DNA from: Pelomyxa schiedti
Lineage: Eukaryota > Protista > Evosea
Length of the DNA stretch: 34,906 nt
Assembly (NCBI GenBank): GCA_020536535.1
Contig: JAHLWZ010000975.1
Location: 1-34,906 of the forward strand
Direction of reading: 5' to 3'
The translations under genes were made by a program, and so were the position numbers. How positions within the stretch are numbered: the first letter of the stretch is position 1; every line of letters starts with the position of its first letter. The notes below the pieces were generated by a model. The model worked only from the letters and a program-made list of their open reading frames with translations, had not been told where the DNA came from and ran no database searches. This document shows positions 4,056 to 24,970 of the stretch, piece by piece.

Positions 4056-4141
4056 TTCTGTGTTGGCCGTTTTTCTCATTCCTCAGGGAAGGAATCTTTA
4101 ACTTATAAGGAAAAAATTGTTTTTATTATAAAGAGGGTCTA

Positions 4142-7100
4142 TTACATCCAAACAAATGCCAAAACAACAGCCAAAGAAACAACCCAAAGAGCCACAGTCA
4201 TGTGGAGACCCCACAATGACTGTCTTGGTACTGATAATCCCGTTGGGGTCTGGTTGTATCCCAACAGCTCAAATAGATACACTAGAGGCAGAAGCAGTAA
4301 CCTGACACAATACCTAGCCAGTGGGTGATGTGTAAGCCATAGTGCAAATGGTGGTGATGTGGCATAGTAGAGGTCTATGAATTTACGGCCCAGATAGTGG
4401 TTGTGTAGAGTTGTATCCCTGTTTGTTTTGTTTGTTATATGAAAAGACATGATTGATATAATTGAACCTGAAACGGCGAAGTGTGTTGATTCTTGGGTCT
4501 AGGGGTGACCCATAAGCAGCAGTGGCAATGAAGCAACCACCTCTTTTGGCTTTTTTCGCACTACATTTGTAGCTCATAGCCTGGGTGTGAAGAGAAAGTG
4601 ATTCCGGTGAATAATAAGAATCCTGCCCAAAGAGTAAGGAACGGATAGCGTAAGTATGTACTAACCTCAATTGTGGGGTCATATTCATCACAAAAAAGTG
4701 CTGCCCTCCTAAAAAAAAAAAAGGTAAGCAATGGCAGACAACATGGATGCAAGTACTTTGAAATACTCTCTATCTTCGCTGATTGTTCTTGCAGATCATC
4801 CATCACCGAGGAAGACGACGAAGTAGTGGTAGAACATTGTGGTGGAGGTGGAGGTGGAGCTGCTGCTGCAGAGCCAGATGGAGGCGGCGGCGGAGCGGAT
4901 TCAGATGGAGGAGGCATGTGTGAAGGTGTTGGTGTAGGTTGAGCTTGAGGTTTAGGTTGAGGTTGGGATTGAGGTGCAGGTGAAGGCTTGGGTGGAGCGG
5001 GGCTGGCAGCGGCACATGCCGCGGGGACTGGGATTGATCTCGCCATGTCCTTCTTTTGGTTCATGGCGCTTCCTGCTTTTCCTCTGCCTTTGGCATTCGA
5101 TTTCGGTGCTTCCTCACATTTAATGTCGCATTTCATGTCACATTTCATGTCACATTTTGGGGAATAGTCACATTTTTCCTCGCATTTCGATTTTTTCTTG
5201 GCTTTGTATTCGCGTTTAACGTCACACATCCCTGCTTCTTCTTTCATCTTGCTCAACCCTCTTGGAGCACCAGGAGCGCGACGGAACTCCATGTAATCAT
5301 CCTCCTCTTCACATTCTGAGTCAGAGCTGTCACTGGCACTGCCACTGCTGCTGCTACTCGACTTGCGTCTTTGCTTATATTTTTTTTTGCCACCACCCCA
5401 CGAGGAGCTTCTTGTATCAGCAGTTGTAGAGCCGCTGATTTGCCAATCTTTTTCCCATTGAGTGGTATTTTAGAATTCAAGGCCATACGAGGATTAGATG
5501 TGGACACTTTTCTAGATTTTTTGGTTTTTTTCCCTGGAGCCCAGTAATCAAACTCAGTGTGGTGGTAAGCCTTTGGGTACATTTTCCTAAGTCCATAATT
5601 AAAATGTGAATTTCCAGGCCGACCGTAGTACTACATTTCTCACCTGGATGAGACCACACTGACGGTGGTATTATAATGAACCTTCTTTATTTCCTTCCAG
5701 TTTGTGCAAAATGGAATTTCATCCACGCTTTCTGCTTTGTCTAACGTGGCAATAGGAGGTGTGGGTTTCATCTGTACTTCCCTAGTTCATGTTTTAAAAT
5801 AAAAAAAATAGTAATCATAAAAAAGACCTACCCTCTTTTCTCTGCTTCAGTTCTTTCCTGGATGCCATTAGGGTAATGTAGGATGATTCTTTTGGAATAC
5901 CTCAACGGCAATGAAACTTGTCAACGTGGTTGCTAAAGAATACCTCACACCAAGATCTATTATTTCACCTTTGCGCTACTGTGTGGTTACAAAGAGGTAT
6001 TCTGTCTCCCTAATACCTTTTCCCGTGCAAGTTCACTTGAGACATTGTCCTCAGCAAGGCTACTTTCCTCCCAGTCTCTGTGCAGAAAGAATTCTCAGTT
6101 TAATGTAATAATGCTGGAGATAACAGACCGAACAATAGCTCGGGCGCATAGCCTGTGAAGAGTGAGTCCATTTACAGTGTCACCAATGCTTGATGTTACA
6201 GTAGTGAGAAACTGAGCCCCAGTGTCACTTTCTTTGCCTTGGAGAGTAACCTTTGGGAGAAAGAAGTTTGTAATCACCAAATATAGGCGGAGACATACGC
6301 CATGGCAGTCAGCGTTAATAAAAGAATAAACAATGACTCTATCTCCAGAGAAAAGAGACATGACCTTTTGGGGGGCCTGTCTCGCTACAGAAGGAAATAT
6401 GGTAGCAGAAGAGGCACTCCCGCTTCCCCATTTTATTGCTATATCTTTCAAACAAGCTTGCTTACTTCTAGATATTTGACTTTGTACCTATGCAGTTAAA
6501 TTAGCAGAAAACGTTTTTAAGTCCAAGTTTACCTGTCCTCGGAGTGGATTTGATTTCGAAACAAATTCACAGGCACCACCTCCTAAACGGGCAAAGGACA
6601 TGAGGTTGTGTCGGTGTACTTCAGTACCAACACCAAGGGAGAAAACCCGGGTTTTACTGTGGGGATCCTGACAGTGATCAAGAATACTCTACAAAGTATT
6701 TAGCAGATAATTCAAGAGAATGATTACCAACCTTCATCACTTGTAGATCGTTGGCAATATCACCATCAGATATGATGAACAAGTTATAATTTGTTGAGCG
6801 TTGTTGAGCATCATTACTGTCCCGGGTGCACTCAATTTCTAGAAGAACACTTTTTAAAGCGGGCCAGAGCATACTCCCTCCCCAATTCGCTTGTAATTGC
6901 TTCAGGTCATTACTTAAATAAATAGCGTGGGGTGCATTGGTACCATGATATGGTTATGAGCTATGGACTGGGTTTCAGAGGTTTTTACAACGGAGGTGAG
7001 GAAGAGTGCTTCAAATGTGGATCCAAATGTTATTACATTGAATCGAGACATCATTGGTACCCCCCAAACTAGGCCGGTTATTAAGGAAGATGATATGAGA

Positions 7101-10100
7101 AGACACACGTAAGTTGAGGGAGACCTGTTTGCATTCGAGCAGACATGGCCCCATACTAGCAGATTGATCAATAAGTAGTATATCTAAGTTTTGGTTTAGA
7201 AAATATTGAATAAGTTAAAATTTTACACTCGGTATTGGAATCCACAGATTCACTGAGAGTTGGATAGAGCGCAACCATGGCAACATACTCCTCATTGGGA
7301 GGTATTGTGTTGTTGGATTTCGTTGGGGTTAAGGCATCAAGTTGAGGTGCCTTTTCCACCCACATGAATGGTGTGTGGCTATCACACATACGAACAAGGA
7401 GTATGAAGTCACTTGAAGGAGGTTCTGAAGGTATATCAACAAAGGGAATTCAAAGCAAGGAAAAACCATCAATCCAGAACAGTGTAGCTTTTCTTGGGGT
7501 TTGCTTGAATCTTATAGAATGTGTCGGACTCTCAATTTCGTGTATCACATGTGGCATATTGATGGCAATCTCCATTGAAAATGGACCCTGCATTGCGGGA
7601 AGGTGAAAATGCATATGTAAATAAAGCCATATAAACCCGATGCTCTGTCACACTAATGGTGCTTGTATTGTGCTGTGTGATGGGAGCAAGTGCACTGTGT
7701 TTTAACTGTCCGACAAGGTTCACGGGGCAAAGAAACTTCCTAGCCATGGCTTCGATTCCCAGTTCAGTAATGTCTAGTATTTCAATTGAAGGTAAGCGTA
7801 TTCTTAATATGGAGGCTGATACATGAGATCTTAATCACAACTTTCGTGTGTGGGGGGAGATTGCCCACTGAAACTGTGAAAACATTGGATTTGGCCTCAT
7901 CGAGTAGGTAGGCCCCATCGCCTCTCTTGATTGCTTCCTTGTATTCCTTATGAGCTTGTTCTTTCTCCTTTACTACTCCAATGACATGTTTGTCTGGATG
8001 CAGGTGAATGGGAAAGAAAAGTGCTCAATAATGCATACGGTTTATGAACGCCTCAAAGCCCACAACAGCTGATTTTTCGTCTAAAGGAAAAACATATTTT
8101 GCTTCTATTGGCGTTGCACTTGTGTTATGAAATTCTTGGAGGATGACGACTTCACCCACAAGATCTACACACATCAGTTGATTGAAACGCTAAGCATGCA
8201 TACCAATCAGCTTTGCGTGGATGCTAATAGCTTCCAGTGGTATGGGTTGCCCTGTGCTAGATACTAATCCACCTTTTTCTTTGGACTGGCGAACTAGTAA
8301 AATAATGTTTTGAACAAAAAAAAACATACAGCTGGCAATTCCGGCTTTGCTGCAGGGATGTTTGAAGAATCAACAATGACACGTTTTTTTATTCCAGAGA
8401 GTATACTCGAAAGTAAGGTGTTATCCTGCTGTTTTGGGTTCTCTGGCTTAAATCCAGAAATTTCCAGAAGGTACTGCACATGTTGTTGTGCAGTGGTATA
8501 GATCACATATCTTTGAGAATCAGTTTCCATTAGAAGAATAGAACTTGACACACTCATCGTCATCAAACTCGCTTTTTACTCCTGGTATTGCTTTTACACC
8601 GCGACAACTGTTAAAACTAGGAGGAGGCGCTGTCAAGGAGAAATCGTATTTATGTAAGTCCTTCACATTCCCAAGTGCGACCCGCGATAATAACAAGTAT
8701 CTACAGAGTAAAAAGGAAGGAAAGCTATTATGAGGGATGTCCACCAACATATAAGGTACCTGTTCCCATTTTCGTCTCCAGTGGTATATTTCAAGGCTGT
8801 TAGAGGATCATCACTGAAGTAAAGGCCGGCACCAAGGTTCCCCGCATTTGTCCGCTTTACACCAAGTGTTGTGGTAACAGTATGTGGAAGTAGCATTCCT
8901 CGTGAAAGAATTCCCAGCCAATTACCTTATGATATTAAGTTCCCGGCATTACATCTCCTATTTGAGTTAACCTATGGCAGAGCCGTGAAATAGGAGCCTT
9001 TCGTTACCGATGTCTGAATTAAAATTGGACAAGTCCATTTGCCTTGAAACTTTGAATACATTCGAAACACTCAAGTGAGGTGCGTGTTGTGCCACAAGAT
9101 CTAGAACATTTGAATATTCCAGAGTTTCGGATGGGAGAAGCTCAATTGTTGCTCCAAGGGAATAATAACTTGGGAGACAGTAAGGAATGTGTAAAAGGTG
9201 GAATTACAGTACAGCAAATCAACATCTCCAAGGTTGCCTGTTAGGTTGAATGAGCCTTCTCCTATACAGGACACATCCCGCATATCCTGAAGAGTGTCCA
9301 TCCAAGATAGTACCTGCTCGATAGTAGAGATATCCTGCATTGAAAATATCAAACGAAGGAAAATGTTCTATGTGAAAATATCTACATTTTGCATGTTTGA
9401 AGCTGTAGGAACAAAGGAAAAAAATTCAGTTGTAAGTTGATGTGCAACTGTGGGGTCCAGTTCACCATTTTCTATCGCCTTTGTAGAGTTTTAGTAGTCT
9501 TTCTAAAAGGCACAAACCAACCTGCTGAATCTTCCTCAGGACCACGGCAGCTTTTTCTATTTGAGGGGAAGAGAGCTGCTTCAAGGAGATATTCTTAGAG
9601 CAAAGTTGGATTGCTGATTCCTTCCAAAGTCCAATTAAGAGCTTTCTGACAGCAGCAGGCACAATGGAGGCACTTGCTGCATCCAATAAACCATCACGTT
9701 CAAAGTTAACATAACAAACAAATAAACAAACGAGTACCAGTGGTGTTTCCTATGTTGGCAGAAGATAGAAGGACCTTTTGGTATTTATTTTTGGTTGTCT
9801 AGGAATAGTAGTTTAGAAGAAAAGAAGGTGAACTGTACTTTAAGGTACTTTTTCTCTGAAGAGTGAACCGTAAACAGCCACGGCATCAGTCCATGAATGA
9901 ACATACATGTGATAGGGTTTTGAAATGTTTTTATCTAGTTGTTCCATTGTGCCCTTAAGTGTTACGATGCGAAAGAAGCGTGCTTGTCCATCCACTGTGC
10001 AATGTTATCTAAGAATGATGAAAGATGATAACCTCCAATGTGCAGTTCCATTAGCAATAAAGATGACCTCTTAACAAAGAACTTGGAGAGTAAATCTCTT

Positions 10101-10631
10101 CTCACAACAAAGTATGTCTGAGGGAAGTACGGTGCATCAATTGAATTTGCCTCATATTCCTACCAAAAAGGAGAAAGATAATGGTGAGCCTCCAGTTTAC
10201 AAGGAAATAAGATAGAAATATTCTCCGGTCAATATCCAAGCATAACGTCTGCACACCCTCACAACTCTATGTGCCCAAGTCCCAAGGCTAGCATTGCCTT
10301 CGAATTCAGAAATTTGGTGCATGTCATCGCGAATGACGTGGGCAGTGGGGTCCAATGGCACTGACACAGGCGGTGGCCCAACTGGGCCCGGCTCGACCAC
10401 CGGTGGGTCACACACCACGTCCTGCAACTCCGGGGGCGGCGGCAAGTTGGTGTCCCACGCCGCAGCCTCGTTGCACGACAACTTGGCGCGCTGGACCAGG
10501 TGGTCCCTCAGTCCCCCGCCCGGAGGAGCAAGTTGGGGTCGGGGCCTGGGCGGCGGCTTGTTCCACAGGGTCCTGGGCTGAAATCTTTTGACGACCACTA
10601 CCGGCCTGTTGGGCTTCAACCTCGACGGCAT
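4142..10631 (-). CDS. PARP4: PARP4 (vault PARP)-like protein: PARP regulatory + catalytic, VIT, vWA, low-complexity linker, Ras switch-I peptide, CFI-box-CTERM and C-terminal TM; multi-exon
   Basis: Spliced motifs RLLFHGSAIGNWLGILSRGMLLP, GVKRTNAGNLGAGLYFSDDPLTALKY, VALGNVKDLHKYDFSLTAPPPSFNSCRGV and EFDDDE|YVIY parallel the PARP4 catalytic domain. VIT: GGLVSSTGQPIPLEAISIHAKLI...VKEKEQAHKEYKEAIKRGDGAYLLDE...VFTVSVGNLPP. vWA: NLFIISDG and QAPQKVMSLFSGDRVIVYSF. Continuity into the 4142-5700 tail relies on predicted introns and is less certain than the core. Confidence 0.85.
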
Positions 10632-24578: not shown

Positions 24579-24970
24579 TTCTCCTTCTCCCTCAATTCGA
24601 CTTCTTACATTTCCCATGATAAAGCCAAATCACCAGCGAAGCCACCATCGACTCCACCACAGCCAATGCGTTGGTCAACGCCCACCAAGACCAAAAAACA
24701 TTAACTCCCCATCACCACAAACCCCTAGTCAGACACATAACAATCTGCAGAGGTTTTTCTTTGTGGAAAAGAAAACCTTTCACTCTATCAAGCCAACTTC
24801 TTCTCTTCTTTTACGCCGAGACACAGCGCAAAATCCATTCAATATGGTTGATCCGATTGCGTGTTGTTAGAATCACCACCCGCACAAAAAATATCCAAAC
24901 ACGTCGGGAAAACTTCCCCTTTTGGTGTTTTTCGCCAAAGCCACGTAATTTCGAAATTCACTTCACTTCA

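Follow-up and report, generated by a model that had tools for sequence, protein, structure and literature searches.

A prokaryote-type CFI-box-CTERM domain and a predicted transmembrane helix at the end of a PARP4-like gene of the amoeba Pelomyxa schiedti

How does a gene of an anaerobic amoeba that encodes a relative of the vault ADP-ribosyltransferase PARP4 come to end in a domain known mainly from prokaryotes, and what might such an ending do there? The question is raised by a contig of Pelomyxa schiedti (JAHLWZ010000975.1, GenBank assembly GCA_020536535.1), the whole stretch of which, 34,906 nucleotides (nt) of the forward strand, is called the window here. A PARP4-like gene lies on its minus strand, and the last exons of this gene encode a CFI-box-CTERM domain followed by a hydrophobic stretch that reaches the stop codon. 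We consider it rather probable that the product is a cytosol-facing, tail-anchored ADP-ribosyltransferase of the PARP4 type, the anchor cassette of which would have been captured once from bacteria.

The original prediction, made from the DNA letters, had read at this place a CFI-box-CTERM domain split by a 49-nt intron (4419-4467) and a terminal hydrophobic stretch, together ending a vault-PARP homologue, and had taken the intron as an argument against contamination. The peptides, the intron, and the hydrophobic stretch proved exact, and the domain is genuine and full length. On the spliced protein (GenBank P0083), the profile NF041770, which has a curated cut-off of 40 bits, scores 84.9 bits (E 2.5e-24) over residues 1554-1622 and profile positions 1-69 of 69, which excludes a chance match. 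The two exon pieces also match separately: window:4470-4691:-, which ends GGCFIATAAYGS...LRRF, covers positions 1-22 (31.3 bits), and window:4145-4417:-, which begins DTTLH, covers positions 24-69 of 69 (40.0 bits). Position 23 is an arginine codon that the intron splits into AG and G. The parts of the tail, in reading order, are the following.

4470..4535, minus strand: CFI-box part 1, profile positions 1-22, from the CFIATAAYG motif through LRRF (NF041770).
4419..4467, minus strand: 49-nt GT..AG spliceosomal intron within the CFI-box, phase 2, in the Arg codon between FR and D (RNA).
4280..4417, minus strand: CFI-box part 2, profile positions 24-69, its last helix partly hydrophobic (…RLLLLPLV) (NF041770 and AlphaFold2).
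4208..4279, minus strand: 24-residue spacer from the domain to the terminal helix, hydrophilic after the last CFI-box helix (sequence reading).
4142..4207, minus strand: predicted terminal transmembrane (TM) helix of 21 residues, running to the last residue, then the stop codon 4142-4144 (hydropathy; model helix 104-125).

When P0083 is aligned with bacterial copies, to which the amoebal domain is 49-67% identical, the signature residues (CFIATAA.G, L..FRD..L, G, YY..SP..A, and L.P) are all present. The columns conserved in at least 90% of 149 bacterial copies number 22, and 21 of these are identical in all seven eukaryote copies compared. As these seven are only 51-77% identical to each other, the retention of the 21 columns argues for purifying selection. 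Pfam has no model for the tail, and its sole match there (CECR6/TMEM121) is at chance level. A weak tblastn match at 24704-24883, considered as a second CFI-box in the window, was dismissed as noise. The name ‘CFI-box’ was found nowhere in the literature searched.

The gene around the domain is intron-dense and expressed. Our model runs from an ATG at 10631 to the stop codon at 4142-4144, with 32 exons, 31 GT..AG introns of 38-97 nt each, and a product of 1669 amino acids (aa); it was built from RNA joints, the requirement of an open frame, and, for the remaining introns, maximal similarity to a paralogue. Short, dense GT-AG introns agree with the 7.4 introns per gene reported for the P. schiedti genome (PMC8887013).

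4142..10631, minus strand: whole coding region of the PARP4-like gene (RNA joints and open-frame/homology search).

GenBank P0083, ‘protein mono-ADP-ribosyltransferase PARP4 [Pelomyxa schiedti]’, has 1667 aa and equals the model except for two residues near 236, where an alternative acceptor lies near 9677-9731. Gene and tail are thus already public, annotated merely as PARP4 and with the tail undescribed; neither PARP nor vault is mentioned in the P. schiedti papers PMC8887013 and PMC10579272.

Expression was followed in one study's three single-cell transcriptome runs, the RNA contigs of which were mapped to positions 4100-10000. They show 25 spliced joints, 15 of them in the records listed, and all have CT..AC ends as read on the plus strand. 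The three tail introns (4419-4467, 4623-4665, and 4709-4756) are skipped exactly by spliced contigs in three runs, so that the CFI-box stands within a spliced, expressed eukaryotic gene, which rules out contamination. One spliced contig extends from 4126 to between 5146 and 5253, depending on the run, and thus about 500 nt into a 691-nt linker exon; a second starts at about 5289 and continues up through the VWA exons. The reading frame is open from the VWA region across the linker exon, including 5254-5288, to the stop. Elsewhere in the gene, 9419-9812 (the exons just before the PARP helical domain) has no contig coverage in the three runs, and both of its flanks are covered in at least one.

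The body of the protein has the Pfam domain order of PARP4, namely PARP_reg, PARP catalytic, VIT, and VWA, as the following features record.

8459..9602, minus strand, introns included: PARP regulatory (helical) and catalytic domains (PF02877, residues 262-340; PF00644, residues 377-547, E 3.2e-25).
7772..8237, minus strand: VIT domain (PF08487, residues 607-717, profile 1-111 of 111, E 1.5e-34); its exon pieces match too.
6563..7181, minus strand: VWA domain (PF13768, VWA_3, residues 870-1033, E 2.1e-10).

PF13757 also matched in the VIT position (PF08487/PF13757). Among solved structures, human PARP4 matches the catalytic region best (E 1.2e-46; PARP1, 5e-17), and the catalytic triad is identical to that of human PARP4 in the alignment: the His of ‘fHGS’, the Tyr of ‘lYFSD’, and the Glu of ‘ddEyviY’. 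The protein is a homologue of the vault PARP. Pfam matched no BRCT domain in P0083 (E up to 0.001); P0086, which is a more distant relative, has one (PF00533). Residues 614-1202, the VIT-VWA body (window about 5900-8220, minus strand), also match TIGR03788, ‘marine proteobacterial sortase target protein’, at 193 bits, well short of the cut-off of 551; the match points to a core architecture common to P0083 and to bacterial VIT-VWA surface proteins with C-terminal sorting signals.

The original prediction went further and let the tail replace the end of PARP4 that binds the major vault protein (MVP). In human PARP4, the MINT domain (residues 1562-1724) docks on MVP repeats 3-5 (PMC12280208). 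Pfam finds no match in P0083 residues 1190-1667, and these C-terminal 478 residues have no match to the solved full-length human PARP4; since the C-terminus of a sea-urchin PARP4-like protein likewise has none, the blank MINT comparison is uninformative about a replacement.

The tail is not confined to this gene. Eight eukaryote PARP4-like genes from five data sources carry a CFI-box and a TM helix at their ends: the three P. schiedti paralogues, and a further five genes in four other datasets.

P0083, P. schiedti, this window: a mini-exon resembling Ras switch I precedes the CFI-box.
P0003 (KAH3768093.1), P. schiedti: CFI-box preceded by a Synaptobrevin motif.
P0084, P. schiedti, another contig: the third paralogue.
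L002, ENA assembly ERZ21831265, GC content 37-39%: 34-nt intron at the same position and in the same phase as 4419-4467.
L005, ENA assembly ERZ21831265, GC content 37-39%: 35-nt intron at the same position and in the same phase as 4419-4467.
L001 / P0005, run SRR23919873: 953-nt contig, domain without an intron.
L087 / P0021, JGI 3300048575, GC content 60%: intron-free, with 50% identity between its PARP4-like part and P0085 of Mastigamoeba.
L088 / P0088, ENA ERZ15610578: PARP/VIT/VWA open reading frame (ORF) and, 77 nt on, an ORF with Ras, a Pro-rich linker, CFI-box, and TM helix.

The position of the CFI-box intron is thus common to three loci (P0083, L002, and L005). In L087, a single uninterrupted ORF of more than 2 kb leads from the VWA domain to the tail; on L087:1-3520, it holds VWA, a stretch that looks coiled-coil or SNARE-like by eye, the CFI-box, and a TM helix ending in CCC, and an RPC5-like gene begins 67 nt downstream of the ORF. 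The current model of the Mastigamoeba balamuthi homologue (P0085, 1073 aa) gave no NF041770 match. It ends where its alignment with the L087 ORF ends, and that ORF continues for about 370 more residues to its tail, so the Mastigamoeba model may be truncated. The sea-urchin protein was unmatched in a tail-restricted search, and the same word-based search, made with the P0003 tail, also missed P0083, which was recovered by the whole-protein search only. Eukaryote-looking CFI-box matches were found only on PARP4-like genes, in searches that did not profile eukaryote proteomes exhaustively.

These copies bear on the possibility that the tail is a relic or is used separately, a transcript starting in or after the low-complexity linker exon yielding a small protein of CFI-box and TM helix, with the fusion an annotation artefact. 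Such a reading could draw on positions 5254-5288 (35 nt of the linker exon), which the RNA contigs among the records listed leave unbridged, on an in-frame Met shortly ahead of the CFI-box, and on L001, where a prokaryote-style gene call yields a 155-aa tail ORF. Yet the tail RNA contig reaches 5253 (run X1), far upstream of that Met, and the frame is open across the gap; within the 953 nt of L001, the same frame upstream of the tail encodes the post-VWA motif of the PARP4 type, a single stop interrupting the two; and L087 joins VWA and tail in one ORF, all eight independent copies keeping the same order. Separate transcription of the tail exons is unlikely, and we give an artefactual fusion very little credence.

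Among prokaryotes, the domain is abundant, in line with the original prediction. A scan for the pattern CFIATAA[YF]G over one genome per prokaryote species yielded at least 594 confirmed relatives in many phyla, including Chloroflexota, Thermodesulfobacteriota, Nitrospirota, Pseudomonadota, Bdellovibrionota, and Myxococcota; the best 80 of these at least 594 are 45-59% identical to the amoebal domain. A HMMER search of the second exon against 1.84 billion representatives gave 71 matches at E up to 0.001, the best at 2.5e-10. Among the matches, P0002-P0004 are more than 40% identical through spacer and terminal helix and look eukaryotic, the same span of the bacterial group being about 35% identical.

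A full tree of 156 rows was too poorly resolved, and a 58-row subset (69 columns, unrooted) was used instead. Six of the seven eukaryote copies fall into one clade in it (support 82/85), and only 1 of 500 label shuffles was as clustered; monophyly of all seven is not rejected by the approximately unbiased (AU) test (p 0.43). The nearest named prokaryote is a Pseudobdellovibrionaceae genome; 69 columns are too few, however, to name a donor. The endosymbiont ‘Ca. Syntrophus pelomyxae’ that P. schiedti harbours (PMC10579272) was considered as the donor and set aside: Syntrophales carry the domain, but the two Syntrophales copies in the tree, which does not include the symbiont genome, are not near the amoebal cluster.

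Might the CFI-box instead be an old eukaryotic or shared domain, inherited vertically, or have passed from amoebae to bacteria? An unrooted and unresolved tree leaves room for this, and the amoebae that carry the tail family have very different genomes (GC content 37-60%, intron-rich and intron-poor). Against it, hundreds of prokaryote species in many phyla stand opposite a single protein family from one group of amoebae, the eukaryote copies cluster as the shuffles indicate, the sea-urchin relative was unmatched in the tail-restricted search, and human PARP4 has no match to the C-terminal region. We judge this alternative highly improbable. From these comparisons, a bacterial origin of the tail appears well supported, and we infer from them a single capture and a transfer from bacteria to amoebae.

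What was captured can be read from the layout of the bacterial proteins. In most of them, 26-46 residues follow the domain and hold a TM helix with an Arg/Lys cluster behind it, and signal peptides begin many of the proteins; the bacterial module is thus a domain, a spacer, a TM helix, and a basic tail at the end of a secreted protein. In P0083, 45 residues follow the domain and close in a hydrophobic helix of 21-25 residues. Residues 1643-1667 are the only stretch of the 1667-aa protein that passes a hydropathy threshold applied to the whole of it (19-residue window, Kyte-Doolittle mean of at least 1.6), and the first 70 residues are hydrophilic (maximum -0.16), with no signal peptide. All eight eukaryote tails consist of the domain, a spacer, and a TM helix reaching the final residues, and a basic cluster is absent from every one. 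Two parts of the original prediction must be amended here: the helix is present, but it is not separate from the domain, since bacterial copies share the layout and the helix belongs to the captured module; and the tail on PARP4 is real, but other genes have it as well. The capture probably took in the cassette as a whole.

A single hydrophobic window at the extreme end and the lack of a signal peptide make P0083 read as a tail-anchored protein. A membrane tether would be the obvious reading of the tail, and the amoebal tails appear to have been remodelled to sit the other way round, the N-terminus being cytosolic.

The last 126 residues were modelled with AlphaFold2 (50-row alignment); the model has a mean predicted local distance difference test score (pLDDT) of 84.8 and five helices, four of which form the CFI-box and the fifth the TM helix. 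Helices 43-64 and 67-86, in CFI-box part 2, have block pLDDT values of 88-96, and the spacer has values of 66-72. With this model, Foldseek found no match in the PDB, and a VIA-align wide search reached at best a Z of 4.2, which is below noise for helical models. Scores in an ESM Atlas feature search with the tail stayed below 0.9; an ESM Atlas shape search returned one bacterial surface-protein cluster (TM-score 0.63 by query), which is probably another CFI-box tail.

The same model bears on a different membrane arrangement, a hairpin or monotopic anchor in which the last CFI-box helix and the terminal helix dip into the membrane with both ends cytosolic, as in hairpin proteins of lipid droplets and the endoplasmic reticulum (ER), so that the CFI-box would itself be membrane-embedded. 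In favour of it, the domain closes in a long, partly hydrophobic helix (…RLLLLPLVYLFELL), which in P0003 exceeds the threshold; two hydrophobic stretches in succession are frequent among bacterial copies; and the PDB rows at Z of about 4, which are not significant, include membrane-protein helices. In P0083, however, the helix stays below the threshold, has a conserved Arg and Pro, and is modelled confidently within the helical domain, and the 24-residue hydrophilic spacer exceeds a typical hairpin turn. A hairpin therefore seems unlikely to us.

Between the enzyme body and the cassette lies a slot that differs among the copies. In P0083, the linker exon leads up to it and a mini-exon occupies it.

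4757..5447, minus strand: low-complexity linker, a single 691-nt exon (continuous open frame; RNA covers 4756-5253 and about 5289-5447).
4666..4708, minus strand: 43-nt mini-exon encoding a Ras switch-I-like peptide (…YDPTIE, with DSY in the next exon) (RNA joints).

The linker exon encodes a Ser run, a Ser/Lys-rich part, acidic patches, short Lys/Cys-rich repeats of the KCDMKCDMKCDIKCEE type, and a long Pro/Ala/Ser/Gln stretch. The mini-exon is flanked by introns of 48 nt (4709-4756) and 43 nt (4623-4665), and its peptide has weak PDB matches to Rap/Ras residues 26-42. In P0088 (L088:6001-7752), from a related uncultured eukaryote, the place after the PARP4-like body and ahead of the CFI-box is taken by a real Ras-family domain (PF00071, E 6.5e-19), in two stretches: the C-terminal half first, and then the G1 motif and switch I. 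To judge from this likeness, the P0083 mini-exon may be the relic of such a domain. In P0003, a Synaptobrevin/R-SNARE motif (PF00957, E 3.1e-11) stands ahead of the CFI-box. The slot thus holds an R-SNARE (P0003), a Ras-like domain (P0088), or a switch-I scrap (P0083). Pfam found no R-SNARE motif in P0083, and BLASTP of P0083 against the P0003 and P0084 SNARE regions aligned nothing but the beginning of the CFI-box; a remnant SNARE seen by eye before the Ras-like mini-exon of P0083 was dropped, being supported by neither search. In P0084, heptads around residues 1290-1340 (…IIRQQDECLDRIETNI…) resemble a Q-SNARE by eye before the CFI-box, with no Pfam SNARE at E up to 0.001.

The tail-anchored enzyme that we propose would be built and have arisen as follows. 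Its N-terminal 1200 residues form the enzyme body (PARP helical and catalytic domains with the H-Y-E triad, then VIT and VWA), and a disordered linker of about 300 residues would join this body to a cassette derived from bacteria, in which a compact CFI-box-CTERM domain of four helices is followed by a short spacer and a single TM helix. Secreted surface proteins of bacteria end in this cassette, and there the basic cluster comes after it in the cytoplasm. In the amoebal proteins, the missing signal peptide, a helix that runs to the last residue, and the missing basic cluster suggest post-translational insertion in the manner of a tail anchor, so that enzyme and CFI-box would both face the cytosol at an endomembrane. 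A single capture, in an ancestor shared by P. schiedti and some related amoebae, would have been followed by gene duplication, gain of an intron in the domain, and swaps of the adaptor piece just upstream. The CFI-box would have been kept for an intrinsic, membrane-proximal role, and the SNARE and Ras pieces of the relatives may hint at the membranes of vesicle traffic.

A bolder version appears doubtful to us. It would make the CFI-box and TM helix a self-sufficient, portable module that works without a bacterial sorting enzyme and in inverted orientation, and would recognize a family of endomembrane PARP4 proteins in Archamoebae for which SNARE and Ras pieces serve as membrane addresses. If it were true, the target membranes could be those around the prokaryotic symbionts of Pelomyxa, or the proteins could belong to membrane-attached vault-like particles.

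Several points weigh against a tail-anchored PARP4 with a bacterial cassette. Because of the 35-nt RNA gap at 5254-5288, a single transcript from the PARP domain to the tail is inferred rather than seen, and all RNA evidence comes from one study. The domain tree of 69 columns is poorly resolved; two probably bacterial sequences (P0061 and P0014) fall inside the eukaryote cluster, and P0005 falls just outside it, in the adjoining polytomy. No solved fold similar to the CFI-box was found by Foldseek or VIA-align. In the paralogue P0003, the last CFI-box helix (1558-1577) passes the hydropathy threshold, and with this helix partly hydrophobic, a helical hairpin or an in-plane helix is possible. 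Finally, membrane insertion, topology, and activity are predictions from sequence.

Comparison with known proteins places the proposed tail-anchored PARP4. Bacterial CFI-box proteins likewise have the full 69-residue domain at the C-terminus, a spacer, and one TM helix, but the amoebal copy has a spliceosomal intron, a eukaryote host, a longer spacer, and no basic cluster. Their passenger is a secreted surface protein, whereas the amoebal passenger is a cytosolic enzyme without a signal peptide, and the implied topology would be inverted. Human PARP4 has the same order of PARP helical, catalytic, VIT, and VWA domains and the identical H, Y, and E; P0083 differs from it in having no detected BRCT domain and in ending in a predicted membrane anchor. 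P0003 is colinear in its PARP4-like body (55% identity over 79% of its length) and shares the CFI-box and terminal TM helix, but has an R-SNARE before the CFI-box where P0083 has the switch-I-like mini-exon. The closest functional analogue may be animal PARP16 (ARTD15), a tail-anchored ADP-ribosyltransferase of the ER in which, too, one C-terminal TM helix fixes a cytosol-facing PARP catalytic domain to an endomembrane (PMC3372510). PARP16 is a small protein of an unrelated PARP subfamily, has no VIT or VWA, and is anchored by an ordinary TM helix.

Transfers of whole genes from bacteria to protists are common. The capture of a bacterial C-terminal anchor, its gain of an intron, and its fusion to a eukaryotic enzyme would be much rarer. 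New here are P0083 as a further P. schiedti paralogue with the tail, the place of the TM helix within the bacterial cassette, the absence of the basic cluster from the amoebal copies, the wider occurrence in amoebae, the shared intron position, and the variable adaptor slot. For the CFI-box, the amoebal genes amount to a natural experiment, in which the domain is under strong constraint, presumably has no bacterial partner enzyme, and would lie on the opposite side of a membrane; constraint under such circumstances speaks for a role of the domain's own, for instance in membrane association or self-assembly, and not for a mere cleavage signal. For the PARP family, the tail would represent a second, independent route to a membrane-tethered enzyme, beside PARP16 of animals. 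Taken with the relatives that bear SNARE or Ras pieces, the tail suggests that ADP-ribosylation is tied to membrane traffic in anaerobic amoebae.

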